Shown: positions 10,975-64,000 of the stretch, piece after piece
Layout of the letters: every line of letters begins with the position of its first letter
Position numbering within the stretch: the first letter of the stretch is position 1
IMG/VR virus record: IMGVR_UViG_3300019776_000324
Span: 248,001-312,000 of that record
Length of the DNA stretch: 64,000 bases
Strand: one strand, 5' to 3'
Notes under the pieces: generated by a model
Database searches by the model: none
Told to the model about the DNA's origin: nothing
The model's input: the letters and a program-made list of their open reading frames with translations, nothing else
Position numbers and translations under genes: made by a program

Positions 10975-11117
10975 TGACTCCGAAGTGGTTGCAAAAGTTA
11001 CGCGACCAGCGTAAAATCAAAGAACAAGAAGAATTAATCAAGGCGCTAAAACGCCCTGAGAATGAACCACGCCGTAGACCGGCAGCTAAATTTTCAAATA
11101 ATATGGGACCGAAATGA
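10974..11117 (+). CDS. Small basic hypothetical protein, 47 aa, not in ORF track
   Basis: MTPKWLQKLRDQRK...; TAATG and ATGA couplings on both sides. Confidence 0.55.
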   Translation: MTPKWLQKLRDQRKIKEQEELIKALKRPENEPRRRPAAKFSNNMGPK

Positions 11118-12034
11118 AACAACTTTGGGTAGAAAAGTATAGACCAACTACAGTAGATGGTTATGTGTTTGTTGATGATAATCAACGAAAGCAAGTACAA
11201 GCATGGATTAAAGATGGAACTATTCCGCAATTATTGTTTAGCGGAAGTCCGGGCACAGGTAAAACTACCTTGGCTAAAATGTTAATCAACGAACTCAAGG
11301 TTGATGAATATGATGTTATGTATGTTAACGGATCCAAGGAAGGTCGTAAGATTGAGTGGGTTACTAAATTAGAATCGTTTTGTCAAACCATGCCTTATGG
11401 CACATTTAAGGTTGTATTGATCGACGAAGCAGACTACATGAATCAGCAGTCAGTACAGCCAGCACTTCGTAACTTGATGGAAGACTACAGTGAAACAGTT
11501 AGATTTATTTTGACTTGTAACTATCCTAACAAGATTATTCCACCGCTACATTCAAGGCTACAACAGTTTCATATTCTTAAAACTGATCATACAGAGTTTA
11601 CGGCTAGAGTGGCCACAGTGTTGGTTGAAGAAGGTGTTGAATTTGATATTGACACCCTAGACAGTTATGTTCGCGCTACCTATCCAGACTTGCGCAAGTG
11701 TTTAAATCTTGTACAACAAAACAGCATCAGCGGATCGTTAAATGCGCCTAGCAGTGCAGATAAGAGTGTAGGTGACTGGAAGTTGGACTGTGTAGAATTA
11801 TTCAAGCATGGCAAGATTCGCGAAGCTCGTACATTGTTGTGTCAACAAAGCACACCAGAAGAAGCTGATGAAATCTTCCGTTGGATGTATGACAACTTAG
11901 ACTTGTGGTCAACTGATCCGCACAAGCAAGATCAAGCTATTGTTATTATTCGCAATGGATTAGTTAATATTCCATTGGTAGCAGATCAAGAAATTAACTT
12001 GTCAGCAACTATTACAGAACTATGTCAACTATAA
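11114..12034 (+). CDS. Sliding-clamp loader AAA+ subunit (T4 gp44/RFC-small-like)
   Basis: LWVEKYRP, GSPGTGKTT Walker A, LIDEAD Walker B, FILTCN, SRL arginine finger, DLRK..N. Confidence 0.93.
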   Translation: MKQLWVEKYRPTTVDGYVFVDDNQRKQVQAWIKDGTIPQLLFSGSPGTGKTTLAKMLINELKVDEYDVMYVNGSKEGRKIEWVTKLESFCQTMPYGTFKVVLIDEADYMNQQSVQPALRNLMEDYSETVRFILTCNYPNKIIPPLHSRLQQFHILKTDHTEFTARVATVLVEEGVEFDIDTLDSYVRATYPDLRKCLNLVQQNSISGSLNAPSSADKSVGDWKLDCVELFKHGKIREARTLLCQQSTPEEADEIFRWMYDNLDLWSTDPHKQDQAIVIIRNGLVNIPLVADQEINLSATITELCQL

Positions 12035-42068: not shown

Positions 42069-42074
42069 AAAAAT

Positions 42075-44732
42075 TTGAGTTATATAGATGCACTATTTGA
42101 TCGTGAACACGATCGTATTCATGTTGTAGAACGACGAGATGGAAAGAGATGTTATCAAGAATATCCAGCCAACTATGTGTTCTACTACGAAGACCCTCGC
42201 GGTAAATTCCAAAGTATTTTTAACACACCTGTAAGTAGATTCTCTACTCGCAACAACAAAGAATTTCGCAAAGAGATTCGCATACAGTCAGGCAAGCAAT
42301 TATACGAGTCGGATATCAATCCAATCTTTCGTTGCCTAGAAGAAAACTACAAAGGACAAGACGGTCCTAAATTAAATGTAGCGTTCTTCGACATTGAGGT
42401 GGACTTTGATCCTGATCGCGGATTTAGTCCACCAAGTGATCCGTTCAATGCTATCACTGCTATTTCAGTTTACTTGCAGTGGTTAGATCAGCTAGTCACT
42501 CTAGTAGTTCCACCCAAACATATGAGCACAGAAACTGCTCAGGAAATTGCCAGCGAGTTTGAAAACACCATTATCTTCCAAGACGAAGGTGAAATGTTAA
42601 AAACATTCCTGGACTTGATTGAAGATGCTGATGCACTGTCAGGTTGGAACAGTGAAGGCTTCGATATTCCGTACACAGTTAATCGTGTTACTCGTGTGTT
42701 AAGCAAAGACGACACACGGCGCTTCTGCTTGTGGAATCAATATCCTAAAAAGCGTATGTTTGAACGCTTTGGTAACGAACAAGAAACATATGACTTGATT
42801 GGCCGTGTGCATATGGACTATATGCAACTGTATCGCAAATACACATATGAAGAGCGTCATAGTTATAGCTTGGATGCTATTCTTGAATACGAAGGTCTGG
42901 AAGGCAAGACCAAGTTTGAAGGCACACTGGATCAGCTTTACAATCAAAACTTCAAGACATTTATTGAGTATAACCGACAAGACGTTAACGGGTTGGCACA
43001 GATGGATAAGAAGTTAAAGTTCTTGGATCTTGCCAATACACTGGCGCATGAAAACACAGTGTTGCTACAGACTACCATGGGTGCTGTGGCTGTAACAGAA
43101 CAGGCTATTATTAATGAAGCACACGAGCGTGGCATGGTTGTTCCAAACCGTAAGGAACGCTATTCGGATGAAGACACTCAAGCGGCGGGTGCGTATGTTG
43201 CGTATCCACGCAAGGGCGTTCATGAATATGTCGGGTCGATAGACATTAACTCACTGTACCCTAGTGCGATTCGTGCGCTTAACATGGGACCTGAAACTAT
43301 TGTTGGTCAACTTCGACCAGTAATGACTGATCGCTATATTGCTGACAAGATGCGTAGCGGTAGTAGTTTTGCTGCGGCATGGGAAGGCTTGTTTGGTTCA
43401 TTGGAATTCACAGCAGTAATGGAAATGCAAACAGGCACAGAAATTACTATTGATTGGCAAGGCGGAGAAGAATCAGTTCACAGTGCCGCAGAAGTATGGA
43501 AGATTATCTTTGACAGTAATCAACCTTGGATGATCAGTGCCAACGGAACAATCTTTACCTATGAGCGTGAAGGTGTTATTCCCGGACTATTAAAACGCTG
43601 GTATGCCGAGCGTAAAGAAATGCAGGCTAAACTTAAACAATGTACAACGGCAGAAGATGAAGAATACTGGGATAAACGACAACTCGTTAAAAAGATTAAC
43701 CTTAATAGTTTGTATGGCGCAATTCTTAACCCTGGTTGCCGCTTTTTTGATAAGCGCATTGGACAATCTACCACACTAACTGGTCGTGCTATTGCCAAGC
43801 ATATGGATGCGTATGTAAACGAATGTATTACAGGCAAGTATGACCATGTGGGCGAATCAATCATCTATGGTGATACTGACTCTTGTTACTTTACTGCTTG
43901 GCCTGCTGTCAAGGAAGCAGTAGAGAAGGGCGAGATGGAATGGTCTAAAGATATTGCTGTCCAACTTTACAACAGTATAGCTGATCAAGTCAATGCTAGT
44001 TTCCCAGGATTTATGGAACAGTCATTCCATGTGCCTAGAGAGATGGGCAGTGTGATTAAAGGTGGCCGCGAGATTGTAGCAAGCAAAGGCTTGTTTATTA
44101 CCAAGAAGCGTTATGCTGTCCTGTATTATGACAAAGAAAACAAGCGTGTGGACACACATGGCGAACCAGGCAAAGTAAAAGCCATGGGCTTGGACTTGAA
44201 GCGTAGTGATACTCCTAAGGTTATTCAAGAATTCTTAAGCGAGATCTTAAACGATGTACTGACTGGTAAAACTCGTGAAGAAATCATTGAAAAGATTCGA
44301 AACTTTAAATATGAATTCAAAGAGCGACCAGGTTGGGAGAAGGGTAGTCCCAAGCGTGTAAACAACTTGACCAAGTATGGCAAGGAAGAAGAACGCCTAG
44401 GTAAAGCCAATATGCCAGGACATGTCCGTGCTGCACTTAACTGGAATAATTTGCGTAGAATGAACAGCGACAAGTATAGTTTACAAATTGTTGATGGAAT
44501 GAAAACTATTGTATGTAAACTAAAGCAAAATCCCCTGGGTTGGACCAGCATAGGCTATCCTACAGATGAATTGCATTTACCACAGTGGTTCAAAGAATTA
44601 CCATTTGACGATAGTGAAATGGAAGCAACAGTGGTTGATCAAAAATTAGACAACTTATTAGGTGTGCTAGAATGGGATTTAAAGTCGGCCACTAATACTG
44701 AAAACACCTTCCAAAGTTTATTCGAGTTCTAA
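42075..44732 (+). CDS. polB: Family B DNA polymerase (T4 gp43-like)
   Basis: Exo FDIE, GWN..FDIPY, YN.QDV; Pol DINSLYPS, K...NSLYG, YGDTDS, KKRY; TTG start. Confidence 0.97.
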   Translation: MSYIDALFDREHDRIHVVERRDGKRCYQEYPANYVFYYEDPRGKFQSIFNTPVSRFSTRNNKEFRKEIRIQSGKQLYESDINPIFRCLEENYKGQDGPKLNVAFFDIEVDFDPDRGFSPPSDPFNAITAISVYLQWLDQLVTLVVPPKHMSTETAQEIASEFENTIIFQDEGEMLKTFLDLIEDADALSGWNSEGFDIPYTVNRVTRVLSKDDTRRFCLWNQYPKKRMFERFGNEQETYDLIGRVHMDYMQLYRKYTYEERHSYSLDAILEYEGLEGKTKFEGTLDQLYNQNFKTFIEYNRQDVNGLAQMDKKLKFLDLANTLAHENTVLLQTTMGAVAVTEQAIINEAHERGMVVPNRKERYSDEDTQAAGAYVAYPRKGVHEYVGSIDINSLYPSAIRALNMGPETIVGQLRPVMTDRYIADKMRSGSSFAAAWEGLFGSLEFTAVMEMQTGTEITIDWQGGEESVHSAAEVWKIIFDSNQPWMISANGTIFTYEREGVIPGLLKRWYAERKEMQAKLKQCTTAEDEEYWDKRQLVKKINLNSLYGAILNPGCRFFDKRIGQSTTLTGRAIAKHMDAYVNECITGKYDHVGESIIYGDTDSCYFTAWPAVKEAVEKGEMEWSKDIAVQLYNSIADQVNASFPGFMEQSFHVPREMGSVIKGGREIVASKGLFITKKRYAVLYYDKENKRVDTHGEPGKVKAMGLDLKRSDTPKVIQEFLSEILNDVLTGKTREEIIEKIRNFKYEFKERPGWEKGSPKRVNNLTKYGKEEERLGKANMPGHVRAALNWNNLRRMNSDKYSLQIVDGMKTIVCKLKQNPLGWTSIGYPTDELHLPQWFKELPFDDSEMEATVVDQKLDNLLGVLEWDLKSATNTENTFQSLFEF

Positions 44733-44733
44733 C

Positions 44734-45669
44734 ATGAAATTAAGTCAACTTGTCTCTTTTAAAAACGAACTTGAAAAACTTTCAGCAATACCAGCACATC
44801 AAACAGCTGATCTGGAAGTTAAAAAAATTACACATTTGGTTGAATCGTTTCCAACAACAGCTTCTCAATTTGATAAATTTGAACAGGCTAGACTTTCTAT
44901 TACAGAAAAATTTGTTGAACTCGAATCTCAACTTGATGAATTAAAGCAATCGATTAAGAAACAAATTGAAGATGCTGAGCGTCCTTGGTTTGCTGAAAGT
45001 TATCGTTTGTACGAGAAGGAGATGGTCTTTGAATCAGTTGACTACATTTTAAATCGTCAACCTGCTATATTAGATGAAACCAACGAGTTCTATAAAACTC
45101 GTATCACAAGATATACAAACTGGAAATATCCAGCTATGATTATTCGTCCTGGACTAGAAACACATAGCAACTATATGGTTGACTGCGATCCATTATATCT
45201 AGTTGATGAACAATACGATTTATTAACTCCGGTTATAAATCAACACAGCGAAGTTTACCAAAAAAGATTGCGCCCTTATGTTATCAACGAAAGACAGGAT
45301 GGCGAAATACTTACTCGTTTGCCCAACAACCAATTTGGATTAATACTTGCTTATAACTTTTTTAATTTTAGACCGTTAGAAGTTATTCGAAAATATCTTA
45401 CTGAACTTTATGAAAAATTAAGAACAGGCGGAGTATTGATCATGACCATAAATGACTGTGATCGGGACAAAGGTGTAATGCTAGTAGAACAACATTTTGC
45501 TTGTTATACTCCTGGAAACATGATCATCGATCTGGCAAAGAGTATCGGGTATGAAGTAGAGTTTGTTTGGGACGACCAAGGACCATCTACCTGGATCGAA
45601 TTCCGCAAACCGGGCGAGTTGATTAGTCTTAGAGGCGGTCAAACTTTGGCAACAATTGTACCAAAATAA
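44734..45669 (+). CDS. Coiled-coil plus class I SAM-methyltransferase-like fold protein
   Basis: LP.NQFG.I..YNFF ... L..LY.KLR.GG.L.M pattern; canonical GxGxG absent. Confidence 0.5.
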   Translation: MKLSQLVSFKNELEKLSAIPAHQTADLEVKKITHLVESFPTTASQFDKFEQARLSITEKFVELESQLDELKQSIKKQIEDAERPWFAESYRLYEKEMVFESVDYILNRQPAILDETNEFYKTRITRYTNWKYPAMIIRPGLETHSNYMVDCDPLYLVDEQYDLLTPVINQHSEVYQKRLRPYVINERQDGEILTRLPNNQFGLILAYNFFNFRPLEVIRKYLTELYEKLRTGGVLIMTINDCDRDKGVMLVEQHFACYTPGNMIIDLAKSIGYEVEFVWDDQGPSTWIEFRKPGELISLRGGQTLATIVPK

Positions 45670-45728
45670 ATCAAAAACAGTTGCAAAATCTAAATAAACC
45701 AGTTATAATCAACAACAAGGAGAATTAC

Positions 45729-46451
45729 ATGAGAGATCACTTATTAGACTTAGTAGAACACACGCACGACTTAGGTTGCATTGACCTAGTTAAAATTACA
45801 GGAACTGCCCAAGAGACAGATATCTTTGGTATTGCCGAAGATCGTAGCGTTATTGTAGAAGGCAAGTATGCTGGCCCAGTGGGAGAATTTGTTGGCTTAT
45901 TTGGTATGCCAAACTTGGCAAAACTTAAGGTATTGTTAAACTTGCAAGAGTACAAAGAAGATGCCAAACTCAGTATCACTAACAAAGCTGATGGCACATT
46001 AGATGGCATCAACTTTGAAAACAAATCAGGCGACTTTAAAAACAACTATCGTTTCATGACAGCGGCTGCAGTTAACGAAAAGGCTAAGACAGCTAAGATG
46101 CGCCCAGTTACATGGCAAGTTGAGTTTACTCCTACTGTAGGATCAATCCAGCGTTTAAAAATGCAAGCACAGGCCAATGCCGAGGAACCAACATTCCAAG
46201 TTAGCACTGATGGTAGTGATTTAAAATTTGCATTTGGTGATCATTCAACTCACAGTGGTAACTTTGTATTCCAATCTGGTGTAGGCGGACAACTCAAACG
46301 AGCATGGTCATATCCAATTGCTCATGTCATTAGTATTTTAAATTTAACTGGTGACAAGACTATGCGTTTCAGTGATGACGGTGTTGCAGAGATTACTGTT
46401 GATTCTGGCTTGGCTGTTTATAGTTACAAGATTCCAGCGCAGTCTAAATAA
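45729..46451 (+). CDS. Sliding clamp (gp45/PCNA-like)
   Basis: About 240 aa, alpha/beta repeat, near PolB; C-terminal M.FSD.G...I.VDSG...Y.Y.IP; AAGGAG RBS; dual TTGCAA-17-TATAAT / TAAATA promoter. Confidence 0.7.
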   Translation: MRDHLLDLVEHTHDLGCIDLVKITGTAQETDIFGIAEDRSVIVEGKYAGPVGEFVGLFGMPNLAKLKVLLNLQEYKEDAKLSITNKADGTLDGINFENKSGDFKNNYRFMTAAAVNEKAKTAKMRPVTWQVEFTPTVGSIQRLKMQAQANAEEPTFQVSTDGSDLKFAFGDHSTHSGNFVFQSGVGGQLKRAWSYPIAHVISILNLTGDKTMRFSDDGVAEITVDSGLAVYSYKIPAQSK

Positions 46452-46454
46452 TCA

Positions 46455-47075
46455 ATGGGGGCTCCTTATACTATCCTGGATCACATTCAACTTGACTGTG
46501 ATTCAGCTACTGACATTGTTGTTGAAATTGGTAGCGAAAATGGAGAGGGGAGCAGTCGATGGTTATATCAGTGGTCTAGTAACCGTGATGTAAAATTTTA
46601 TAGTATAGATGTAGAGCACAGTGAAAGAGAAATAAGTTATCCAGAAATACCTTGGGTAGTATCGGAATCTGGATCATTGTGGTGTAAAAACATATTACCA
46701 ACTCTAAATAAAGCTATTAAAGTATTATACTTAGATAATTTTGATTACATGTACAACACTAACAACCCATCGGTATTGGAACAGTATGCTCGTCAAGTAA
46801 CCTTGTATGCGCAACGAGGAGTAGTTATGAATAATCAAAATTGCATGGAAGAACATCGATTACAAGTTGAATATTGTTTACCGTACATGGCAGAACAATC
46901 TGTAATTATAATGGATGATACTTATTATGACCCAGCATTAGAATTTCAACCAGCAAACGAACTTCCACAATGGTATGGTAAATGTGCTACTGCTATGCCA
47001 CTAATGATCGAAGCTGGATATTCTATAATTAGAGACCAAGAACACAATATAAATTATGCCATTAAATCAAGATAA
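46455..47075 (+). CDS. Class I SAM-dependent methyltransferase-like protein
   Basis: IVVEIGS..G.GS, FYSID, LYLD, IIMDDT. Confidence 0.65.
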   Translation: MGAPYTILDHIQLDCDSATDIVVEIGSENGEGSSRWLYQWSSNRDVKFYSIDVEHSEREISYPEIPWVVSESGSLWCKNILPTLNKAIKVLYLDNFDYMYNTNNPSVLEQYARQVTLYAQRGVVMNNQNCMEEHRLQVEYCLPYMAEQSVIIMDDTYYDPALEFQPANELPQWYGKCATAMPLMIEAGYSIIRDQEHNINYAIKSR

Positions 47076-48693
47076 CTTAACAGCCAAACAAAACGATTAC
47101 GCTGTATTCTTACCAGCTATCAGTGGCTTCTATGCTACTTTTGTCGGTAAACAACGAGATCCAGTAAATGGACCTTATGTAGATCCAGCTCGCTTGCCAG
47201 CTGGCATTCCGGACATGGAAATGCTTAACTGGCTTAATCCACAGAAAGGTATGTTTCCGTACAAGTGGTCTTTGTACTCAGGCGGACATGCTAACTTAGA
47301 TCTTAACAAACAAGACTGGTCCGAAGACATGGTTCGCAATCGCGATCCGGGTTCAGTTATCCTTGGCGACTCGGGTGGATTCCAGATTGCTAAAGGCTTG
47401 TGGGAAGGTGACTGGAAGGCTAACAGTGGTTGTCCTAAAGCGCAGAAGAAGCGTGATGCTGTACTTAAATGGTTAGATGGTGTTGCTGACTATGGCATGA
47501 TTCTTGATATTCCAACTTGGGTTATCCACGATAAGAAAGCCAGTGCCGCTTGTCAAATTACCACACTTCAAGAAGCTGTGGACGCTACCAAGTACAACAA
47601 CGACTACTTTATGAAGCATCGCAAAGGTGTTAAGAATGGTGGTGCCAAGTTCTTAAATGTTTTACAAGGTGCTAATCATGCTGACGCAGATCGTTGGTAT
47701 GAAACAATGAAACACTATTGTGATCCTAAAGTATATCCAGACACACATTTTAATGGCTGGTCCATGGGTGGTCAGAACATGTGTGATGTACACTTGGTAC
47801 TTCGTCGGTTGGTAGCACTTAGACACGATGGCTTGCTACAAGAAGGTGTTCACGATTGGATGCACTTCTTGGGCACAAGCAAACTAGAGTGGGCAGTATT
47901 ATTAACAGACATTCAACGAGCTGTTCGCAAATATGTTAATCCTGCATTTACTATTAGTTTTGACTGCGCTAGTCCATTCTTAGCCACAGCTAACGGACAA
48001 GTATATCATCATATTGACTTGCCACACAATGACAAGTGGTGTTATCGAATGAGTCCTATTGTGGACGATAAGAAATATGCCACAGACACTCGTCCATATG
48101 GTCCTACAGTAGTTCAAGAAGGCTATGTTGATCACTTTGATGAAAGTCCAATCAGCCGAGAGCTTAAGATGAAAGACATTTGCATCTATAAAGCAGGTGT
48201 TCGTAAAACTGATGCTGAACTAAACGGAGAAACATTTGATCCCAACAACATGAATCATTTCCATGTTGCTCCAGACTTAAACAAAATTGGTAAGAATGGC
48301 AAGACATCATGGGATAGTTTCAGTTATGCATTGTTAATGGGCCATAATGTTTGGATGCACTTGGAAGCAGTACAACGAGCCAACCGTGAATACGATGCTG
48401 GATCTTGGCCCAAGATGATGTGGAACGAAAACGGTGACCATGCCCGCTTTAAAGACATTGTGGATGCTATCTTTGCCACATCTGATCGTGCAGAAGCTGA
48501 AGCTATCATTGAACACTATGATCGCTATTGGATGGACATTGTTGGTACTCGTGGATTCAAAGGCAAGAAAGCCAAGAACGCACACAGTCAGTTTAATGCC
48601 TTGTTTGAAGTTGATGACAATGACGGAGTCGACGGCGACGAAGTGGAATTTGATGAGTCAAAACTGGATCACTTGGGAGACCAAATTGTTTAA
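47056..48693 (+). CDS. TGT-fold guanine transglycosylase (DpdA/Tgt-like)
   Basis: DSGGFQ, MILD, VLQG, SMGG, HFLG, SFDCASP, HN motifs colinear with tRNA-guanine transglycosylase. Confidence 0.8.
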   Translation: MPLNQDNLTAKQNDYAVFLPAISGFYATFVGKQRDPVNGPYVDPARLPAGIPDMEMLNWLNPQKGMFPYKWSLYSGGHANLDLNKQDWSEDMVRNRDPGSVILGDSGGFQIAKGLWEGDWKANSGCPKAQKKRDAVLKWLDGVADYGMILDIPTWVIHDKKASAACQITTLQEAVDATKYNNDYFMKHRKGVKNGGAKFLNVLQGANHADADRWYETMKHYCDPKVYPDTHFNGWSMGGQNMCDVHLVLRRLVALRHDGLLQEGVHDWMHFLGTSKLEWAVLLTDIQRAVRKYVNPAFTISFDCASPFLATANGQVYHHIDLPHNDKWCYRMSPIVDDKKYATDTRPYGPTVVQEGYVDHFDESPISRELKMKDICIYKAGVRKTDAELNGETFDPNNMNHFHVAPDLNKIGKNGKTSWDSFSYALLMGHNVWMHLEAVQRANREYDAGSWPKMMWNENGDHARFKDIVDAIFATSDRAEAEAIIEHYDRYWMDIVGTRGFKGKKAKNAHSQFNALFEVDDNDGVDGDEVEFDESKLDHLGDQIV

Positions 48694-49048
48694 TCCAATT
48701 TTTATTCCGTTGGTGTTGTTGTTTATTAAACATTGGTATGTTGATTTTGTCAATCAAACACAGGACGAAATTGACAGCAAAGGTACCTACGGTGGACTGG
48801 ATGGCATGTCACACAGTGCCAAACACGGATTAGGAACTATATTTGTATTTTTATTAGTAGGATTAGATCCAGCACTATCTGTAACACTAGGTGCAATTGA
48901 TATGGTTGTACACTATCACATCGATTGGATCAAAATGCGGTTTGGTACTCGTGATGTTGCTACTAAGGAATTTTGGAACCAATTAGGGTTAGATCAGTTA
49001 GCACACGCTCTAACCTATATTGGACTTGTTTGGTTATTATGGATATAA
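48686..49048 (+). CDS. DUF3307-like membrane protein
   Basis: H..VDF..Q, H..KH, HYHID..K, G.DQ..H; start estimated. Confidence 0.7.
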   Translation: MFNPIFIPLVLLFIKHWYVDFVNQTQDEIDSKGTYGGLDGMSHSAKHGLGTIFVFLLVGLDPALSVTLGAIDMVVHYHIDWIKMRFGTRDVATKEFWNQLGLDQLAHALTYIGLVWLLWI

Positions 49049-49050
49049 AA

Positions 49051-49257
49051 ATGATTGATAAATTACAGCACAGACTCAACCACTTAGAAAACGATCATGC
49101 TGCACTTAACAAGCGTATTGACGGAATGGAATCAACTGGTGTCTTTGAAGATGCTACCTTAGAGGTTTTGAAGAAGCAAAGGTTGCATTTGAAGGACGAA
49201 ATCTCTAAAATAAAACTTCAACTTGCATACGAAGCTGGACAACAGGAAAACGATTAA
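49051..49257 (+). CDS. DUF465/YdcH-like coiled-coil protein
   Basis: L...H..L...I ... LKKQRL.LKDEI. Confidence 0.7.
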   Translation: MIDKLQHRLNHLENDHAALNKRIDGMESTGVFEDATLEVLKKQRLHLKDEISKIKLQLAYEAGQQEND

Positions 49258-49790
49258 TGATTAGAGATGGGCACGATGATGTAAGTTTCTTTGTAGGAAC
49301 TGAAGTAGAACACACTCCTGCATTTGGACAAATTACATTATTTGTAGTAGGCTTACAGTCTATAGCAGATATTAAGAACGCACTTAAGACACACCGTGCT
49401 CTAGGCGGATACCTTGTTACCCATATATATTTTGGTGCTAACCAAAGTTTTCCTAACCCAGAATATAGTGATGCTCCTACCTGGCGTGATTGGGAAGGAA
49501 TGATTAATACATTCTTGCAAGACGGATACTTATGCACACTTGATATTGATGTAAAGTGTGTAGAAGGCCTGCTTGAATCTCCGTTGGTGGAATACCACAA
49601 CTTTATTCCAATGATTTCTATTAAACTCCCTTATATTAACCAACTTGGATACAATGCAACTATTAAACTTGATGACAAAGATTTTAAAGCAACCAACCCG
49701 GGCGTCTGGTGCCACTCGCTACACAGCTTACAAAAGCGCGAGGTGTTTACTGACTGGTCTAAATACACAAAGGACGAAGTAATTAAATGA
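49257..49790 (+). CDS. Hypothetical protein in the deazaguanine cluster
   Basis: 177-aa ORF coupled to the T-fold gene; HIYFGANQSF, TNPGVWCH. Confidence 0.7.
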   Translation: MIRDGHDDVSFFVGTEVEHTPAFGQITLFVVGLQSIADIKNALKTHRALGGYLVTHIYFGANQSFPNPEYSDAPTWRDWEGMINTFLQDGYLCTLDIDVKCVEGLLESPLVEYHNFIPMISIKLPYINQLGYNATIKLDDKDFKATNPGVWCHSLHSLQKREVFTDWSKYTKDEVIK

Positions 49791-50251
49791 TACAAGAACA
49801 ACGAGAAACAATAGAGAGAATTAAATCCGCAGCCAATCGTAAGATATGGGTTACTTTCCAGCGAGAAGGTATTCACTGCTATCCTGCGGCAGCAACAGAT
49901 CCTGCGTTAAATACTAACGATGAATACAATGTTGCGTTCCTTGCTAGCCCTCACCGTCATATCTTTCACTTTAGGGTGTCAATCAATGTCTTCCACAATG
50001 ACCGAGACATTGAGTTCATCCAGTTCAAACGCTGGCTCGAGAACTTATACAGTGGGACCGGTCCCTATAATGAAAATCGAGTTTTAGAACTCAACTACAA
50101 GTCCTGCGAAATGATTGCAGACGACTTGTACTTACAAATTGCAGGCCGCTATCCTGGTCGTGCTGTAGAAATCGAAGTGTCCGAAGACGGCGAGAACGGA
50201 TGCTTGATTAGTTATAACCTTACTCGTCCAACACAATCAATTGTAATTTAA
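49787..50251 (+). CDS. QueD-paralog T-fold protein (DpdL-like)
   Basis: GIH ... LASPHRHIF (LxxxHRHxF rather than CxxxHGH), IEF, SCE.IA, V.EDGENG. Confidence 0.7.
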   Translation: MIQEQRETIERIKSAANRKIWVTFQREGIHCYPAAATDPALNTNDEYNVAFLASPHRHIFHFRVSINVFHNDRDIEFIQFKRWLENLYSGTGPYNENRVLELNYKSCEMIADDLYLQIAGRYPGRAVEIEVSEDGENGCLISYNLTRPTQSIVI

Positions 50252-50263
50252 AAAGGAAATAAA

Positions 50264-50491
50264 ATGGGAAAGCCACAACATCGTGTAAACCCTAGAGCTT
50301 TGCAAGCATTGGAAGATTTGTCAAACTATTTGGAATTCTGTGTAGACTACGGTTACAGATATCGCGAAGAAGATTTGTATAACTTCAAAGCGTATGCTTG
50401 GCAACAGTACAACAAGTTTAGCCAGGGTAAAAATGCCAAGAACATGTGGGATGAAGATTCACGCAGATTCTCAGGATATCGCCGTGCGTAA
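50264..50491 (+). CDS. Hypothetical protein
   Basis: AGGA RBS; DL..YL.FC..YGY.Y.E.DLY. Confidence 0.65.
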   Translation: MGKPQHRVNPRALQALEDLSNYLEFCVDYGYRYREEDLYNFKAYAWQQYNKFSQGKNAKNMWDEDSRRFSGYRRA

Positions 50492-51689
50492 GTTATTCTA
50501 CATGGGCTTAGAGAGTTATGAGGCTCGCTATACCTTACAACTAACTGAATGGAATCGGCGTGTGTTTGATCGTCGCGGACTAGATGTGGTATATGTTCCA
50601 GGCCAAACCATTGACGACACTCAGGCTATCTGTGTAGGACAAGTATTAGATGCACATGGTCGTAGTTACTTTGGTATGAGTCAGATGATGAATCTGGTTC
50701 AAATGATGCGTAACGGAGAAGTTACCAGTGAAGATGTTATCTACTTCGAAGACATGTTCCAGCCTGGCATTGAAAGTTTGCCATACATCATGGATCAAGT
50801 TCCAGTAACACATCGTCCGCGTGTGTATGTACGCTGTCTAGCACAAGCTATTGACCCAGATGACTTTGTTCATGTATGGGGCATGCAAAAGTGGATGGAC
50901 TTGTACGAAAAGATGGTCAATGAGTTTGTTACAGGCGTACTAGCTACTAACGAAGAGATGGTAGCTCATATGCGTATTGCAGGCTGGTCGGCTCCAATTT
51001 ACAATATTAGTGGACTAGCATTTGGCAAAGAAGAAGTTCTAGAGCGTATAGGTGGCTCGCAAAATATTAAACCGTTTGACCAACGCAAGATGCGTGTGGG
51101 CTTTGCCGCTAGGTTTGACCAAGAGAAGCAACCAGACTTCTTTATGGACTTGATTGATATGTATCACGATCAGGGCAAACACAAGGATGTAGAGTTTGCT
51201 ATATTCCAAGGTGGCCCGTTGCGTAGTAACAATCAAAAGTATATCGATCGTGCTCGTCAGTTAGAGCGTGAAGGTAAACTTAAAATTTATGAGAACCTAA
51301 AGAAAAATGATTATTATAATCTCCTTAATGATACTCGTGTGCTTTTCAATTGCGCTTTACAAGACTGGGTATCAAACACAGTATCCGAAGCAGATACACT
51401 TGGATCGAATGTTCTATTTCCTGCTTATCGTTCTTTTCCTGAAACTTTCGCAGATGATCCTAACAGGCTTTACATTCCTTGGTCAATAGATGATGCTTAT
51501 CACAAGTTAGAAAACTTGCTAGGTGAACTACATCATAACACAGGACTTATTAGTGACTGGACCGATGGTACTGTGGATCGTGTTGTAGACATTTTAGAAG
51601 GCAAAGGCGAACAATGGAATCGTGCAGGTAATCGCTATCGTGATCATGTAAGCCAAGCCAAGTATCATGTAAGAAAGATCGAAGGATGA
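50484..51689 (+). CDS. GT-B fold glycosyltransferase
   Basis: F.ARFDQEKQP.F, Y..LL...RVL...ALQD.VS.TV.EA...G..VL.P..RSFPE; GTG start. Confidence 0.75.
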   Translation: MRKLFYMGLESYEARYTLQLTEWNRRVFDRRGLDVVYVPGQTIDDTQAICVGQVLDAHGRSYFGMSQMMNLVQMMRNGEVTSEDVIYFEDMFQPGIESLPYIMDQVPVTHRPRVYVRCLAQAIDPDDFVHVWGMQKWMDLYEKMVNEFVTGVLATNEEMVAHMRIAGWSAPIYNISGLAFGKEEVLERIGGSQNIKPFDQRKMRVGFAARFDQEKQPDFFMDLIDMYHDQGKHKDVEFAIFQGGPLRSNNQKYIDRARQLEREGKLKIYENLKKNDYYNLLNDTRVLFNCALQDWVSNTVSEADTLGSNVLFPAYRSFPETFADDPNRLYIPWSIDDAYHKLENLLGELHHNTGLISDWTDGTVDRVVDILEGKGEQWNRAGNRYRDHVSQAKYHVRKIEG

Positions 51690-52636
51690 GAGTAATAGTA
51701 ACTGGTGGTGCCGGCTATATTGGCGGCACAACTGTTCTTAAATTGCTTGATGCTGGACACAGTGTTTTGGCAATTGATCGTCAAATGCCTCCAAAACATT
51801 TAGTTGACTGTGGTGCTAAATGGCATACTGGTGACTTTTCTAGTGAAATTGGATTAGACTGTATAAGATTGTTTGCACCAGATGCTATTATACATTGTGC
51901 TGGTACTAGTTTAGTTGGACCCAGTATGACAAATCCTGGCGAGTACTACGACAATAATTTTGTTAAGACTTTAAGTATGGTTAACTATTTGGTTAACAAC
52001 AAGATGACTAACATTAGAGTTATTTTCAGTAGTAGTGCTGCAACTTATGGCAATCCAGTAATGACGCCTATACAAGAAGTTGATCCAACTGAACCAATCA
52101 GTCCATATGGTCAGAGCAAGCTCATGATTGACTGGATGTTGAGTAGCTATCGCAATGCTTACGGTCTGGACTTTGTAAGTTTTAGATACTTTAATGCTTG
52201 TGGTGCAGAGAGTCAAGCTAGAAATGGACAACTTCCTGGTGCCACGCATATTATTGCTAGAGTATTAGAAGCCATGCGAGATAAAAAACCATTTACTCTT
52301 AATGGCACAGACTATCCTACCAAAGACGGTACCTGTGTTCGAGACTACATTCATGTTGAAGATTTAGCATTGGCACATATTTTAGCAATTGATAAATCTA
52401 TTCCTAGTGACATTTATAATCTTGGCACTTCTGAGGGAACAAGCAATGCCGAAATTATTGACACAGCTAGAATTGTCACAGGACAGAAAATAGAAGTTGT
52501 AGTTGGACCGCAACGCCCAGGTGATCCTGCTATCCTTACTGCTGATGCTGGCAAGTTTATCAAGGTCAGCAATTGGCAACCACAATTCAAGTTAAATGAT
52601 ATTATTCAACATGCATGGGCTTGGTATAATAGATGA
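51686..52636 (+). CDS. galE: UDP-glucose 4-epimerase
   Basis: VTGGAGYIG, FSSSAATYG, YGQSK, RYFNA.G, DGTCVRDYIHV.DLA.AH, RPGDP. Confidence 0.92.
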   Translation: MRVIVTGGAGYIGGTTVLKLLDAGHSVLAIDRQMPPKHLVDCGAKWHTGDFSSEIGLDCIRLFAPDAIIHCAGTSLVGPSMTNPGEYYDNNFVKTLSMVNYLVNNKMTNIRVIFSSSAATYGNPVMTPIQEVDPTEPISPYGQSKLMIDWMLSSYRNAYGLDFVSFRYFNACGAESQARNGQLPGATHIIARVLEAMRDKKPFTLNGTDYPTKDGTCVRDYIHVEDLALAHILAIDKSIPSDIYNLGTSEGTSNAEIIDTARIVTGQKIEVVVGPQRPGDPAILTADAGKFIKVSNWQPQFKLNDIIQHAWAWYNR

Positions 52637-53293: not shown

Positions 53294-54091
53294 TTGACAA
53301 CATTTACATCAGAAGATCGAAACAACGCTACTAAACTAGTAGATGAAGCACCGTTCCATCCTGGATACGAAGATGCCGCAGTAAATCCTAACGAAAGCGG
53401 TCGTCCACTTAGCGTGGTAATTCGCGAACAAATGAAGCTTAGAGGCAAACGCTTTTGGGCAGGTGATAATGTATCTGAATACATTACACAAGAATCAGAC
53501 AAAGAAATGCTTATCAACGAAGCTACACAGGCTTTTGAAAAGGTATTAGACACCTTGTTGATTGATCGTGAAAATGATCCTAACAGTAAGGGCACAGCTC
53601 GTCGTTTGGCTAAGATGTATTATAATGAAATTATGGCAGGTAGATATGAGAAGGCACCAGATGCTACTGCTTTTCCAAATGATAGTGAGGATAGATATGA
53701 AGGTATGTTGGTTGTACGCAGTGAATTGCGTTCTATGTGTAGTCATCATCATCAGCCAGTTAGCGGGGTGGCCTATATTGGCATCATCGCAGCAAACAAA
53801 CTCATTGGTCTTAGCAAGTATACTCGCATTGCTCAATGGTGTGCTCGCCGTGGCACTTTACAAGAAGAGTTATGTAACGACATCGCAAGAGAAATAATGA
53901 AGGCTACAGATTCACAGAATGTTGGCGTGTATATTCAAGCAACACATGGTTGCTGTGAGAATCGCGGCATTATGGCACACAGTAGTTTAACACAAACTAC
54001 AGTACTTAAAGGTGTGTTCAACACAGATCCAGCAACTAAGAAAGAGTTTATGGACAATATTAAATTACAACAGGAGTTTGCCCCAAGATGA
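53294..54091 (+). CDS. folE: GTP cyclohydrolase I
   Basis: T..RLAKMY, SMCSHHHQP, IGLSK..RI, R..LQE, A.H.C...RG, EF; TTG start. Confidence 0.95.
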   Translation: MTTFTSEDRNNATKLVDEAPFHPGYEDAAVNPNESGRPLSVVIREQMKLRGKRFWAGDNVSEYITQESDKEMLINEATQAFEKVLDTLLIDRENDPNSKGTARRLAKMYYNEIMAGRYEKAPDATAFPNDSEDRYEGMLVVRSELRSMCSHHHQPVSGVAYIGIIAANKLIGLSKYTRIAQWCARRGTLQEELCNDIAREIMKATDSQNVGVYIQATHGCCENRGIMAHSSLTQTTVLKGVFNTDPATKKEFMDNIKLQQEFAPR

Positions 54092-57674: not shown

Positions 57675-58181
57675 ATGAACTACACCGGATCAAGACCTTA
57701 CAAATATACAAGTACTAAAGAATATCACGATGCATTTCCTTGCGCTTATCGTCAATGGAGAGCAGATAGTCACTGCAACTTGATTCATGGCTACTCATTT
57801 AGCATGAAGTTTTACTTTGGCACAGACGACTTAGATGTGCGTAACTGGGCTGCTGACTACGGCGGACTCAAAGAACTCAAAGGTATCCTTGAAAGTCAAT
57901 TTGATCATACCTTACTAGTAGCAGAAGATGATCCTGAACTAGAAACATACAAGTTATTACAAGAAAAGAATCTTGCTAAACTAACTATACTACCTAAGCT
58001 AGGTTGCGAAGGTCTAGCAGATCAATTGTACAAGTTTGTAAATGGTGTTTATATTCCAGACATGTGGGGTCAATCAGAAGCAGATCGCTTGTGGTGCTAT
58101 CGTGTGGAAGTTCGCGAAACAATGTCTAACATGGCATATCGCGAAGGACATCGTGAATGGAATGAAGATCTCTTCGAATAA
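57675..58181 (+). CDS. queD: 6-carboxy-5,6,7,8-tetrahydropterin synthase
   Basis: HCNLIHGY (CxxxHG), D.G.LK.LK, FDH.LL, GCE.LA, VEVRET. Confidence 0.88.
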   Translation: MNYTGSRPYKYTSTKEYHDAFPCAYRQWRADSHCNLIHGYSFSMKFYFGTDDLDVRNWAADYGGLKELKGILESQFDHTLLVAEDDPELETYKLLQEKNLAKLTILPKLGCEGLADQLYKFVNGVYIPDMWGQSEADRLWCYRVEVRETMSNMAYREGHREWNEDLFE

Positions 58182-58443
58182 AGTTAACGAAATCCTTGAC
58201 ATACTTCAGGAGGAGTGTGGAGAGGTTATTGTTGCTATCAGCAAGTGTCGTCGCTTTGGTATGGATAACTCCTACAAAGACGGCGGCACACAACGCGAAC
58301 ATTTAATCCAAGAACTTGGCGATGTTACCTTGTTGATCGAATTACTTCACGCACATCAAGTTTTTACTGAACAAGAATTACATCAAGCACAAGTAAGAAA
58401 AAGTCAAAAGTTAGTCAAGTGGTCAAAAATCTATGAAGAATAG
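58162..58443 (+). CDS. MazG-like NTP pyrophosphohydrolase
   Basis: LQEECGEVI.A.SK..RFG ... L..ELGDV. Confidence 0.8.
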   Translation: MKISSNKVNEILDILQEECGEVIVAISKCRRFGMDNSYKDGGTQREHLIQELGDVTLLIELLHAHQVFTEQELHQAQVRKSQKLVKWSKIYEE

Positions 58444-62365: not shown

Positions 62366-62902
62366 ATGAAAAAAGTATATTACACTTGGCAGGATGTTGA
62401 AAATCAAACACAAGAAATTCTGCGTCAACTACAGCGTGATGCATGGATGCCCGATTATGTTGTAGGGCTTACTAGAGGCGGACTTGTTCCAGCTAATCTT
62501 ATTAGCCAATACTTAGAAGTGCCAATGGAAACACTCAAAGTAAGCCTGCGTGACGATGCTAGCCAACCCGAATCAAACTTATGGATGGCCGAAGATGCAT
62601 ACGGTCATGTAGATTATGATCCAATGTCAGGTGGTGATGGGCGTCAAAAGATTCTTATTGTAGACGACATCAATGATTCGGGTGCTACACTTAATTGGAT
62701 TAAACAAGACTGGATGAGTAGTTGTATGCCTGGCGATCTAGAACGCTGGAATCATGTATGGAACGATAATGTTCGTGTTGCTGTACTAGTTGATAACGAA
62801 GCCAGCGCCAGTGAATTAAATGTTAGATATTCAGCCATTGACCTAAATAAAGCTGAAGAAGATTGTTGGATTGTGTTTCCTTGGGAAGATTGGTGGAAGT
62901 GA
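62366..62902 (+). CDS. Purine phosphoribosyltransferase (Gpt-like)
   Basis: VVGLTRGGLVPA, LIVDDINDSGAT PRPP loop, WIVFPWE. Confidence 0.9.
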   Translation: MKKVYYTWQDVENQTQEILRQLQRDAWMPDYVVGLTRGGLVPANLISQYLEVPMETLKVSLRDDASQPESNLWMAEDAYGHVDYDPMSGGDGRQKILIVDDINDSGATLNWIKQDWMSSCMPGDLERWNHVWNDNVRVAVLVDNEASASELNVRYSAIDLNKAEEDCWIVFPWEDWWK

Positions 62903-63587: not shown

Positions 63588-63794
63588 ATGAACATATACT
63601 ATAGAGAATCAACATTGTTAGAACAAATAAATGATGCTATTAGCGACTGCGCTACTAGTAAAAAGCACATTGACTATTTTGAATTAACCAGCGAAGAACT
63701 TGCTTCTAATTGGACCAGTTTTGATAGAACCACAAATAATGGTATCGATGTTAGATATTCCTATAAAGGTATTCCTATAAAGGTTAAAGAATGA
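63588..63794 (+). CDS. Hypothetical protein
   Basis: TAAATA 5 nt before ATG; ATGA overlap with queE. Confidence 0.6.
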
Positions 63795-64000
63795 AAATTA
63801 AAGTATCAGAATTATTTTATAGTTTACAAGGCGAAGGTCGCTTTGTTGGTGTGCCAAGTGTGTTCTTGCGTACATATGGATGTAACTTTAAGTGTGCAGG
63901 CTTTGGTTGCAAGCCAGGCGAAAAGTCAACAGGCGCAGATGAAGTTGCTAAAGAAGTCAGCAAGTATGATACATTCTTAAGTTTGCCATTGGTTGAAACT
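63791..64000 (+). CDS. queE: 7-carboxy-7-deazaguanine synthase QueE (radical SAM), truncated by window end
   Basis: [32 protein letters not shown]. Confidence 0.85.

Follow-up and report, generated by a model that had tools for sequence, protein, structure and literature searches.

A sequence-only reading of a 64,000-nucleotide stretch of viral DNA (IMG/VR record IMGVR_UViG_3300019776_000324, positions 248,001 to 312,000 of that record; hereafter the window) raised the question of whether an oversized protein resembling tRNA-guanine transglycosylase (TGT), encoded beside a DNA polymerase and a presumed sliding clamp, acts on the phage's own DNA rather than on tRNA, and whether it is coupled to replication. 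The earlier note described a protein of 545 aa, against roughly 375 for bacterial Tgt, that keeps the TGT catalytic motifs and an HN motif but lacks the CxCxxC zinc cluster, has N- and C-terminal extensions, and ends in a tail resembling that of the polymerase; a replication-coupled DNA transglycosylase of a distinct subfamily was inferred. We tested each of these points computationally.

The open reading frame and its motifs

We first examined the reading frame itself. The window lies in a complete 344-kb jumbo phage, and the frame is open for 545 aa without the need for an alternative genetic code. The start Met is invariant in an alignment of 50 family sequences. The motifs were located at residues 105-110 (DSGGFQ), 148-151 (MILD), 203-205 (LQG), 234-239 (GWSMGG), 270-273 (HFLG), 302-304 (FDC), 429-433 (GHNVW) and 513-517 (FNALF). 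D105, S106, G108, P153, H270 and D303 are invariant across the 50 diverse relatives, and Q110, D151, N201, G205, G234 and N431 are at least 90% conserved. Profile alignment to E. coli Tgt (b0406) maps DSGGFQ, the base-binding Asp, QG, GG and the FDC nucleophile one to one, and a weak profile hit to Z. mobilis TGT agrees for the motifs up to GG, where that alignment ends. CxCxxC occurs in 0 of 104 full-length family members, whereas E. coli Tgt has CDCYTC at 302 and HN at 333; H430 of the HN motif is 88% conserved.

The observation in the earlier note was therefore confirmed, except for one detail. There is no N-terminal extension, since DSGG sits at residue 105, against 102 in Z. mobilis TGT and 89 in E. 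coli Tgt. The extra length comes from an insertion between the nucleophile Asp and the HN helix (about 58 residues as calculated from the motif positions) and from a longer C-terminus that includes a 47-residue disordered tail. The features of the locus are collected in Table 1.

Table 1. Features of the locus, with positions in the window and the evidence for each assignment.
Position	Strand	Feature	Evidence
11114..12034	+	RFC/DnaX-like AAA+ clamp-loader subunit	TIGR02397, E 7e-14, at genome 259129-259731
42075..44732	+	T4-type family B DNA polymerase (PolB)	phrog_262, E 3e-198
44709..44729	+	PolB C-terminal peptide FQSLFEF	Translation (PolB ends in TFQSLFEF); T-F-x-x-L-F tail conserved in the complete PolB tails of the related loci
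45729..46451	+	PCNA/gp45-like sliding clamp, 240 aa (true start is Met17 of the 45681 ORF)	Homologues are 240 aa; AF2 model pLDDT 85.4; structural matches
47056..48693	+	TGT-superfamily, DpdA-like transglycosylase, 545 aa (P0001)	Reading frame; AF2 model; structural matches; profile match to DpdA2
47368..47385	+	DSGGFQ motif (equivalent to TGT Asp102 region)	Conservation; aligned to DSGGFQ of E. coli Tgt and DSGGYQ of Z. mobilis TGT
47506..47508	+	Asp151, predicted base-binding Asp (LD-IP)	Conservation; aligns to the FDE Asp of Tgt and the invariant D112 of DpdA2
47962..47964	+	Asp303 in SFDC, predicted catalytic nucleophile	Conservation; aligns to MFDC of E. coli Tgt and SYDS of DpdA2
48550..48690	+	Disordered acidic C-terminal tail, residues 499-545	pLDDT below 50 for 499-532; relatives keep an acidic run ending in an L-D-x-L-E-like motif
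48589..48612	+	Clamp-interaction-like motif QFNALFEV, residues 512-519	Resembles the PolB tail; conserved and co-varying in 80 loci; contact residues in the co-fold with the clamp
49257..49790	+	Conserved unknown gene immediately downstream (p177)	Follows the transglycosylase in 72 of 82 loci; no family match
49787..50251	+	DpdL homologue (predicted 7-carboxy-7-deazaguanine decarboxylase)	L-x-x-x-H-R-H-x-F motif; BLASTP to phiST DpdL, E 2e-17; 52% identical to the ACP17 homologue; motif and naming from PMC10516641
50394..51689	+	GT-B (GT4-like) glycosyltransferase, syntenic with the transglycosylase	In 62 of 82 loci, including PA5oct; Atlas look-alikes are Glycos_transf_1 clusters and tRNA-queuosine mannosyltransferase clusters (a lead only)
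53294..54091	+	GTP cyclohydrolase I FolE	NCBIfam FolE, E 7e-41; phrog_2197
57675..58181	+	QueD-like 6-carboxytetrahydropterin synthase	phrog_2389, E 1e-34; TIGR03367, E 8e-7
58042..58443		MazG-like pyrophosphohydrolase	
62366..62902		Xanthine/hypoxanthine-type phosphoribosyltransferase	
63791..64000	+	Start of QueE-like radical SAM enzyme (285 aa, runs past the window end; genome 311791-312648)	phrog_2076, E 1e-53; QueE models, E 1e-9 to 1e-12

Predicted fold and family placement

We next asked to which family the protein belongs. Single-sequence searches of PHROGs, NCBIfam, PADLOC and PDB sequences found nothing, and a megablast search of the 10-kb region against phages found no match. The family, which has more than 7,400 clusters at 90% identity, carries no Pfam, PHROG or NCBIfam name. 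The family profile searched against PDB sequences gave only the Z. mobilis TGT hit mentioned above, at E about 1.2, which is suggestive but not significant on its own. On the other hand, the AlphaFold model (pLDDT 87.6) was matched by Foldseek to Z. mobilis TGT (probability 1.00, E 2e-7), and the five best VIA-align matches among solved structures all belong to the TGT superfamily, namely ArcTGT (Z 19.8), QTRT2 (18.6), bacterial TGT (17.7), the DNA preQ0 insertase DpdA (16.6) and Cap10 (14.9), with generic barrels at 11.6 or less. Hits among viral models include Motura TGT at E 9e-11 and nt-1 DpdA2 at 2.6e-8. The protein thus meets the fold and catalytic-residue criteria of the TGT superfamily but not that of the zinc site, of which only the His of HN is kept.

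Clustering within tRNA Tgt had been named beforehand as an outcome that would count against a distinct subfamily. A formal tree was not built, because at 20% identity or less over about 200 alignable columns it would not be trustworthy, and profile-profile and structural scores were used instead. No NCBIfam family, including the Tgt models, matches even at E<=1. By profile, the family is linked to DpdA2 (99%), more weakly to Tgt (93.8%) and DpdA3 (86%), and not to DpdA1 of the 9g/Seurat type (5.8% against Seurat DpdA).

The nearest known group is therefore phage DpdA2 of the Vibrio phage nt-1/VH7D/KVP40 type (Hutinet et al. 2019, PMC6884629). Both are larger than bacterial Tgt (about 420-470 aa for DpdA2), share DSGG-x-Q, the base-binding Asp, QG, H-L-G and the S-x-D-S nucleophile strand, lack a Pfam assignment, and are encoded with FolE, QueD and QueE. 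The zinc cluster is also absent from all 31 DpdA2 sequences examined, so that its loss does not define the DNA-acting phage branches, and 83 of 117 DpdA2 members end in an LF-type C-terminal motif; neither property is peculiar to the present family. However, tblastn found nothing in either direction, and the profile match covers only the core, 194 of 475 columns at 19% identity, with the N-terminal 95 and C-terminal 170 profile columns unaligned. The present family is about 17 times larger in the 90% database (more than 7,472 clusters against 441) and sits next to PolB and the clamp rather than inside the preQ0 cluster.

Phage DpdA3 (Cellulophaga phage phiST, Campylobacter CP220; PMC10516641) follows the same pathway logic, with FolE, QueD, QueE and DpdL but no QueC, encoded near the polymerase, and phiST replaces all G with 7-deazaguanine. 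However, phiST DpdA3 is only 259 aa, has DNGAG where this family has DSGGFQ, and has no LF tail; the profile match covers 83 columns and Foldseek gave E 1e-2. Bacterial Tgt shares the (beta/alpha)8 fold and the catalytic residues in the same order, at 13% identity or less. Bacterial DpdA (PDB 7ui4), a TGT-fold enzyme acting on DNA, was matched structurally over 306 residues but gave no sequence-level hit, and it works with DpdB in a restriction-modification-like island (PMC10516641), not with a replisome.

Genomic context

We examined the surroundings of the gene for 7-deazaguanine synthesis genes, co-encoding with which was taken as a criterion for a phage DpdA of any subfamily. The criterion is fulfilled: FolE, QueD, QueE and the DpdL homologue lie within 17 kb on the same strand. 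QueC is not encoded; the only QueC-like hit, just beyond the window, is the NAD synthase NadE. This gene set predicts 7-deazaguanine in the DNA. The order PolB-(p311)-clamp-transglycosylase-p177-DpdL-GT-GalE-p196-FolE-QueD, in which GT is the glycosyltransferase, holds in about 80 related IMG/VR loci, with PolB and the clamp each found in 79 of 82. The order is kept in Pseudomonas phage PA5oct, and also in a 30%-identical 272-kb jumbo phage. PA5oct DNA resists five G-containing restriction enzymes, which the authors read as modified G (PMC12191111); this evidence is indirect, and the nucleosides of virion DNA and their dependence on the gene were not measured here. A promoter and terminator scan of 41900-54200 did not exceed shuffles.

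The neighbouring clamp candidate gave nothing by sequence or profile search against PDB, and only the fold search identified it: its top 38 structural matches are all sliding clamps or clamp-fold processivity factors, led by PCNA at Z 18.0, with T4 gp45 at 15.3.

The C-terminal tail and the clamp

We then tested the proposed clamp-binding tail, whose QFNALFEV motif lies 28 residues from the end of the protein. Taken alone, the motif is not beyond chance: F-x-x-[LM]-F was found in the last 60 residues of 4 of the 1249 ORFs of the genome (PolB, this gene and two spurious minus-strand ORFs), where a rough estimate expects 2-3, and this count is not used as evidence. However, its conservation and co-variation across relatives are well beyond chance. 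The PolB and transglycosylase tails pair as FQSLFEF/FNALFEV here, FDSLFGW/FNSLFDV in PA5oct and KLFNY/SLFEF in the relative L095, and where the internal motif is lost (L052 and L058), an LF motif reappears at the extreme C-terminus. The motif is retained when the acidic extension is lost. [LM]F occurs in the last 45 residues of 55 of 103 representatives, against 13% of other windows, whereas shuffled tails average 25.8 with a maximum of 39. The family thus has a conserved short hydrophobic motif in a disordered terminus, like that of the cognate polymerase.

Co-folding of the tail with the clamp had been proposed in advance as a check, with absence of an interaction counting against the reading. 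The clamp modelled with residues 496-545 scored 0.61, against 0.01 for the best of 3 controls. The mark set for a pass was reached by 58 of 80 solved complexes and 2 of 110 mismatched pairs, although these counts hold only roughly because our own alignment was used. The runs agree in at least 61% of contacts. In the model, Q512, F513 and L516-V519 (plus 509-510 and 520-521) contact clamp residues 38-42, 120-127, 217-219 and 234-238, placing the peptide at the connector-loop pocket. Partner pLDDT is only 47-48, the partner's own fold is uncertain, and the pass may reflect memory of solved PCNA or gp45 peptide complexes; as a model rather than a measurement, it leaves docking undecided. The predicted arrangement, a short hydrophobic, aromatic peptide from a disordered C-terminal region on the interdomain connector loop and C-terminal strand of the clamp, resembles that of T4 DNA polymerase and ligase on gp45 (PDB 6drt) and of PIP-box proteins on PCNA. 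In the paper library searched, no base-exchange or hypermodification enzyme is reported to use a clamp.

Interpretation

Every test that could be run agrees with the interpretation in the earlier note, which is therefore supported. The reading that we consider most likely, with a probability of roughly 0.6 for the enzyme, pathway and clamp tethering taken together, is that the gene encodes a DpdA-type DNA transglycosylase of a separate, unnamed subfamily. In this view, the phage's FolE, QueD and QueE would make 7-carboxy-7-deazaguanine, and the DpdL homologue two genes downstream would decarboxylate it to 7-deazaguanine. The enzyme would flip a guanine out of duplex phage DNA, Asp303 would attack C1' as the covalent nucleophile, guanine would leave, and the deazaguanine base held by Asp105, Asp151, Gln and Gly-Gly would be put in its place. 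The tail peptide, copying the clamp-binding tail of the polymerase, would dock on the phage's clamp, so that the enzyme rides on clamps loaded on newly replicated DNA and modifies it processively behind the fork. Our analysis itself demonstrates the fold, the conserved catalytic residues, the absence of the zinc cluster, the gene context and synteny, the clamp fold, the conservation and co-variation of the motif, and a co-fold model that passes its controls, whereas DNA rather than tRNA as substrate, the identity of the base and physical clamp binding are inferences. No activity or binding has been shown, no biochemical or mass-spectrometry data exist for this phage, and DpdL activity has never been reconstituted (PMC10516641). 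Furthermore, distant family members in bacterial islands lack the tail and the replisome context.

Among the alternatives, the one that survives best, although unlikely, is that the enzyme is a DpdA-type DNA transglycosylase whose tail does not bind the clamp but serves as a linker, a contact for another replisome protein such as SSB or helicase, or a DNA-mimicking acidic tail, so that modification is post-replicative and untethered, as currently assumed for DpdA enzymes. PMC10516641 describes insertion as post-replicative, the genome-wide frequency of the motif and the low pLDDT of the co-fold speak for this view, and a second conserved acidic, leucine-rich motif at the extreme C-terminus has no assigned partner. 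On the other hand, the co-variation with the PolB tail across distant phages, the relocation of the motif when the internal copy is lost, the adjacency to the clamp gene in nearly all loci and the specificity of the co-fold against three controls argue against it.

Two further readings are improbable to a similar degree. First, the protein could be a tRNA-guanine transglycosylase that puts a deazaguanine into position 34 of phage or host GUN-anticodon tRNAs, with DNA not modified by it. All TGT catalytic residues are retained, ArcTGT and QTRT2 are the top structural matches, and the phage encodes tRNA-Asp(GTC), Asn(GTT) and His(GTG), which are classical TGT substrates; exchange on tRNA was not assayed. 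However, no Tgt model matches, the zinc cluster is absent, the closest sequence family is DpdA2, whose phage nt-1 carries deazaguanines in its DNA (PMC6884629), the gene sits in the replisome block about 35 kb from the tRNA cluster, and PA5oct DNA resists cleavage at G-containing sites. Second, deazaguanine could enter DNA at the nucleotide level, the base being converted by the phosphoribosyltransferase to a nucleotide, then to the dNTP, which the polymerase incorporates, while MazG clears dGTP and the TGT-like enzyme only patches residual guanines or acts on nucleotides. The phosphoribosyltransferase and the MazG-like enzyme lie inside the QueD-QueE block, phiST also has MazG next to FolE, and a nucleoside form of ADG was reported in CP220-infected cells (PMC10516641). 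However, a transglycosylase is the signature of every phage known to carry deazaguanines (PMC10516641), the strict synteny of the gene with DpdL and the clamp argues for a central role, and the phosphoribosyltransferase sits next to NadE and could serve other salvage.

Least likely is a role outside nucleic-acid base exchange, as a Cap10-like deazaguanine-protein conjugating enzyme or a DNA glycosylase: Cap10 is among the structural matches and distant bacterial relatives sit in two-gene integrase-flanked islands of unknown function (whose partner protein has no family, PADLOC or Atlas name), but Cap10 ranks below the tRNA TGTs and DpdA, there is no PADLOC match, and no CBASS genes were seen among the annotated neighbours, which are replication and deazaguanine-synthesis genes.

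Significance

All 13 phage records with a homologue label the gene 'hypothetical'. The 2025 study that inferred a modified G in PA5oct listed QueE and a pterin synthase but named no insertion enzyme (PMC12191111), and a 2021 survey mentions a 'deazaguanine synthesis/incorporation system' in PA5oct without detail in the main text; the supplements of PMC10516641 and PMC7824862, where the PA5oct homologue gp168 might already be listed as a DpdA or transglycosylase, were not covered.

A more speculative possibility, which we hold only tentatively, is that clamp tethering is a general, unrecognised strategy of phage DNA base-exchange enzymes. This family, most DpdA2 members (71% end in an LF-type motif) and the DpdA1 of phage Seurat, which ends in MELF and lies one small ORF from the clamp and polymerase genes, would all ride the sliding clamp. 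Deazaguanine hypermodification would then be co-replicative rather than free post-replicative, which could explain how some phages reach very high or complete replacement of G. The conserved GT4 glycosyltransferase, GalE and p196 genes next to the enzyme might decorate the inserted base further.

The size of the family would make it one of the most abundant DNA transglycosylase groups in metagenomes, and it would extend the DpdA classification by a further subfamily. The idea, which can be tested directly in the culturable phage PA5oct, also bears on restriction evasion, on modification-dependent defences, and on sequencing or cloning of such phage DNA. A clamp-binding tail would give a physical account of how a base-by-base exchange enzyme can process a 344-kb genome during replication, analogous to PCNA-tethered maintenance methylation and repair.

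Predicted fold and catalytic residues

We first examined the open reading frame at 47056-48693 (+). The window (bases 248001-312000) belongs to a complete 344,244-bp virus record with direct terminal repeats; about 40% of its bases are G+C, and nearly all genes lie on the + strand. The ORF translates to 545 residues without stops, and its start Met aligns with the start of 49 diverse relatives. The motifs listed in the earlier note were all present, and the protein has DSGGFQ at residues 105-110, MILD at 148-151, LQG at 203, GWSMGG at 234, HFLG at 270, FDC at 302-304, GHNVW at 429 and FNALF at 513-517. Sequence searches alone gave no assignment, since PHROGs, NCBIfam (even at E<=1), PADLOC and PDB sequences returned nothing. 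Furthermore, all 13 phage records with a tblastn match, namely the PA5oct-like Pseudomonas jumbo phages at 36% identity, Sinorhizobium phage Phosso and one Vibrio jumbo phage, call the gene "hypothetical". The family is nevertheless very large, with more than 7,472 clusters at 90% identity, none of which has a Pfam domain, and 944 representatives at 50% identity.

We next predicted the structure with AlphaFold2 from an alignment of 50 diverse members. The model was confident (mean pLDDT 87.6, pTM 0.86), and only residues 499-545 were disordered. A Foldseek search placed Z. mobilis TGT first (E 2e-7, probability 1.00). In an exhaustive structural comparison, the five best matches were archaeosine TGT (Z 19.8), QTRT2 (Z 18.6), bacterial TGT (Z 17.7), the DNA preQ0 insertase DpdA (Z 16.6) and Cap10 (Z 14.9), whereas unrelated TIM barrels came next at Z 11.6 or less, indicating that the assignment to the TGT superfamily is secure. 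Across the 50 aligned relatives, D105, S106, G108, P153, H270 and D303 were invariant, and Q110, D151, N201, G205, G234 and N431 were at least 90% conserved. A profile alignment to E. coli Tgt paired each motif with its counterpart: DSGGFQ with DSGGFQ, the LD-IP Asp with the FDE Asp, LQG with IQG, GWxxGG with GYAVGG, HFLG with YLMG, and SFDC with MFDC, the covalent nucleophile. The weak profile hit to Z. mobilis TGT agreed for the motifs up to Gly-Gly, where that alignment ends.

As for the zinc site, E. coli Tgt has CDCYTC at 302 and HN at 333. None of 104 full-length family members has CxCxxC, while the His of HN is kept in 88%, so that the earlier note was right in describing the zinc cluster as lacking and HN as retained. 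However, none of 31 DpdA2 sequences has the cluster either, and its loss is not special to this family. On the other hand, the N-terminal extension claimed in the note was not found: the DSGG motif sits at residue 105, against 102 in Z. mobilis and 89 in E. coli, and the structural alignments start at residues 12-14. The additional 170 or so residues come from an insertion between the nucleophile strand and the HN helix (partly of low confidence, residues 380-410) and from a longer C-terminus that ends in the disordered tail.

Relationship to known transglycosylases

To place the protein among known groups, we compared the family profile with described transglycosylases by hhalign.

Comparison of the family profile with described transglycosylases by hhalign
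Compared with	Result
DpdA2 profile (31 sequences seeded from Vibrio phage VH7D)	99.0%, E 4e-18; only 194 core columns, 19% identity
VH7D DpdA2, single sequence	96.3%
Motura transglycosylase, single sequence	96.1%
E. coli Tgt	93.8%, E 1.8e-7
phiST DpdA3	86%, over 83 columns
Seurat DpdA1	5.8%

BLAST-level searches did not connect this family with DpdA2 or DpdA3 phages in either direction. It is therefore a separate subfamily whose nearest described relative is DpdA2. The earlier note had specified clustering within tRNA Tgt as an outcome that would speak against its reading, and the protein does not cluster there.

More distant members of the family (27-34% identity) lack the C-terminal tail. 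They lie in bacterial chromosomes (a locus designated L092, and further ENA contigs) in integrase-flanked two-gene islands near rplM-rpsI (rpsI only in L092), together with a partner protein of 527-570 residues that has no Pfam, NCBIfam, PADLOC or Atlas name. A prophage-borne member (locus L097) has a 445-aa upstream partner with weak N-terminal similarity to it (E 0.006). This may be a separate mobile system built on the same enzyme.

Genomic context and synteny

We then characterized the genes around the transglycosylase-like gene.

Positions of the features examined (window coordinates unless another record is named)
Feature	Position	Strand
RFC/DnaX-like loader subunit	11114-12034
Radical SAM/SPASM (twitch-type) protein	40936-41985	+
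T4-type family B polymerase (PolB)	42075-44732
311-residue protein (p311)	44734-45669	+
Predicted sliding clamp	45729-46451
206-aa ORF	46455-47075	+
TGT-superfamily protein, predicted transglycosylase	47056-48693	+
ORF overlapping the 3' end of the transglycosylase	48434-49048	+
Second conserved element of the acidic tail	48640-48690	+
Conserved unknown (p177)	49257-49790
DpdL homologue, 154 residues (phrog_17812, "unknown function")	49787-50251	+
GT-B/GT4 glycosyltransferase	50394-51689	+
GalE	51686-52636	+
196-aa protein (p196)	52633-53223	+
FolE	53294-54091
QueD	57675-58181
Block between QueD and QueE	58042-63579	+
MazG-like NTP pyrophosphohydrolase	58042-58443	+
Glycosyltransferase	58488-59306	+
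dTDP-glucose 4,6-dehydratase-like SDR	59310-60359	+
Methyltransferase	60356-61567	+
Xanthine/hypoxanthine-type phosphoribosyltransferase	62366-62902	+
QueE (start)	63791
NAD synthase NadE, just past the window end	genome 312906-313658
tRNA cluster, outside the window	genome 323249-341019
Island of a distant family member	L092:8339-11407
Split PolB of PA5oct	L007:5605-10831
Intein-carrying PolB of the distant 272-kb phage	L095:4955-9154
Seurat DpdA1	L099:7890-8810

The upstream polymerase was assigned by its match to phrog_262 (E 3e-198). The structural model of the predicted clamp (pLDDT 85.4) matched only sliding clamps or clamp-fold processivity factors in its top 38 hits (A. fulgidus PCNA Z 18.0, T4 gp45 Z 15.3). 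The 311-residue protein between PolB and the clamp is conserved in 63 of 82 related loci, whereas the 206-aa ORF between the clamp and the transglycosylase, which overlaps the start of the latter by 20 nt, has no counterpart in any of the 82 loci. By eye both look like class I methyltransferases, but neither matched a family. The radical SAM/SPASM protein just upstream of PolB turns up at varying positions near the clamp or transglycosylase in a few related loci. The PHROG match of the ORF that overlaps the 3' end of the transglycosylase (phrog_2470, membrane protein) covers only residues 89-202, so the real gene probably starts just after 48693.

Downstream, the 154-residue protein carries the L-x-x-x-H-R-H-x-F signature given for DpdL, the proposed 7-carboxy-7-deazaguanine decarboxylase (PMC10516641), and it matches phiST DpdL at E 2e-17 and the ACP17 homologue at 52% identity. 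Homologues co-occur with DpdA2, DpdA3 and this family. The DpdL homologue predicts 7-deazaguanine (dDG) as the DNA base. The only QueC-like hit in the genome is NAD synthase NadE (E 4e-56), and no QueC is encoded. The gene set FolE, QueD, QueE and DpdL without QueC matches that of phiST, whose DNA carries 7-deazaguanine in place of all G (PMC10516641). In addition, the GT-B/GT4 glycosyltransferase, GalE and p196, the last with a faint sugar-aminotransferase hit, are syntenic with the transglycosylase in up to 62 of 82 loci and in PA5oct. The Atlas look-alikes of the glycosyltransferase include tRNA-queuosine mannosyltransferase clusters, and these genes may add a sugar decoration to the modified base, although this is a lead only. 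Between QueD and QueE lie six annotated genes, including the five shown in the table, and two further genes in the block are unknown.

In 80 IMG/VR loci (enzymes 59-90% identical) plus PA5oct, the order PolB, (p311), clamp, transglycosylase, p177, DpdL, GT, GalE, p196, FolE, QueD is almost invariant, and PolB and the clamp are each present in 79 of 82 loci. A 272-kb phage whose enzyme is only about 30% identical keeps PolB, a clamp homologue (E 2e-20) and the transglycosylase in the same order. In the cultured relative PA5oct, gp168 is the 36%-identical homologue, and it lies after the split PolB, a 248-residue clamp-like protein and one small ORF, and six genes before QueE. A study of PA5oct concluded that its G is modified and cited QueE and a pterin synthase, but named no transglycosylase (PMC12191111). 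A 2021 jumbo-phage survey, whose supplement might name the gene but was not examined, states that PA5oct has a "deazaguanine synthesis/incorporation system" (PMC7824862).

The C-terminal tail and its predicted docking on the clamp

PolB ends in TFQSLFEF, and the transglycosylase carries QFNALFEV at residues 512-519 inside its disordered tail, followed by an acidic run. A second conserved element (L-D-x-x-x-L-D-x-L-E-like; a short helix at residues 535-538 in the model) sits at the extreme C-terminus of the acidic tail, as well as in the tails of related loci (L012-L091), and has no assigned partner.

Tail motifs of PolB and the transglycosylase in three phages or loci
Phage or locus	PolB tail	Transglycosylase tail
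This window	FQSLFEF	FNALFEV
PA5oct	FDSLFGW	FNSLFDV
L095 (distant jumbo phage)	KLFNY	SLFEF

The PolB of PA5oct is split by a Hef-like homing endonuclease gene, and the PolB of the distant 272-kb phage carries an intein; in both, the C-terminal LF tail is retained on the last exon or extein. In the 80 loci, every complete PolB tail but one (in locus L044, which appears mis-called) is of the T-F-x-x-L-F type, and nearly all transglycosylases carry F-x-x-L-F. The motif survives in members that lack the acidic extension, and in two members that lost the internal copy an LF motif sits at the very C-terminus. Among 103 full-length representatives, 55 have [LM]F in the last 45 residues, against 13% of other windows, while shuffled tails averaged 25.8 with a maximum of 39 in 1000 shuffles. 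Note that a genome-wide count of the pattern was not above our rough chance estimate and is not used as evidence. The LF-type tail is not confined to this family, since 83 of 117 DpdA2-family proteins have [LMF]F in their last 12 residues, against 6.8% of other windows.

The clamp was subsequently co-folded with residues 496-545, as the earlier note had proposed for testing its suggestion of a clamp-binding peptide. The score was 0.61, whereas the best of 3 controls scored 0.01. The mark was reached by 58 of 80 solved complexes and 2 of 110 mismatched pairs, although these counts hold only roughly because our own alignment was used. The runs agreed in at least 61% of contacts, and partner pLDDT was at least 47. 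The contacts are Q512, F513, L516, F517, E518 and V519 (plus 509-510 and 520-521) on the tail, and residues 38-42, the interdomain connector 120-127, 217-219 and the C-terminal 234-238 on the clamp, which is the canonical client pocket. The model supports binding but does not show it, and because clamp-peptide complexes have been solved, the pass may partly reflect likeness to them.

Interpretation

The earlier note's description of the gene is confirmed apart from the N-terminal extension. Its view of the protein as a replication-coupled DNA transglycosylase of a distinct subfamily is supported by every computational test available, but is unproven biochemically. In the most likely mechanism, FolE, QueD, QueE and DpdL would make free 7-deazaguanine, and the enzyme would perform TGT-type base exchange on duplex phage DNA with Asp303 as nucleophile. 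The tail would hold the enzyme on clamps left on newly made DNA, giving co-replicative, processive modification. Note that the substrate, the base and the binding in this scheme are all inferred, whereas the fold assignment, the conserved residues, the gene order and the tail conservation are shown here.

Other explanations are considered less likely. The tail may have another role. Alternatively, the enzyme may modify tRNA, given that the phage encodes tRNA-Asp, Asn and His with G34; ARAGORN called 29 tRNA genes and a tmRNA in the genome, and all but one tRNA lie in the cluster beyond the window, which includes Asp(GTC), Asn(GTT) and His(GTG). It is also possible that deazaguanine enters at the nucleotide level, since the phosphoribosyltransferase and MazG genes that lie between QueD and QueE could point to a nucleotide-level branch of the pathway. 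A Cap10-like or glycosylase role is the most doubtful.

Taken as a DpdA-type DNA transglycosylase, the protein differs from the described groups in forming a separate subfamily, for which a clamp tether is predicted. In the literature searched, we found no paper that links DpdA to a sliding clamp. In addition to the DpdA2-family proteins with LF/FF-type ends, the Seurat DpdA1 ends in MELF and is separated by one small ORF from the phage's clamp and polymerase genes. A clamp-binding tail may be general among phage DpdAs.
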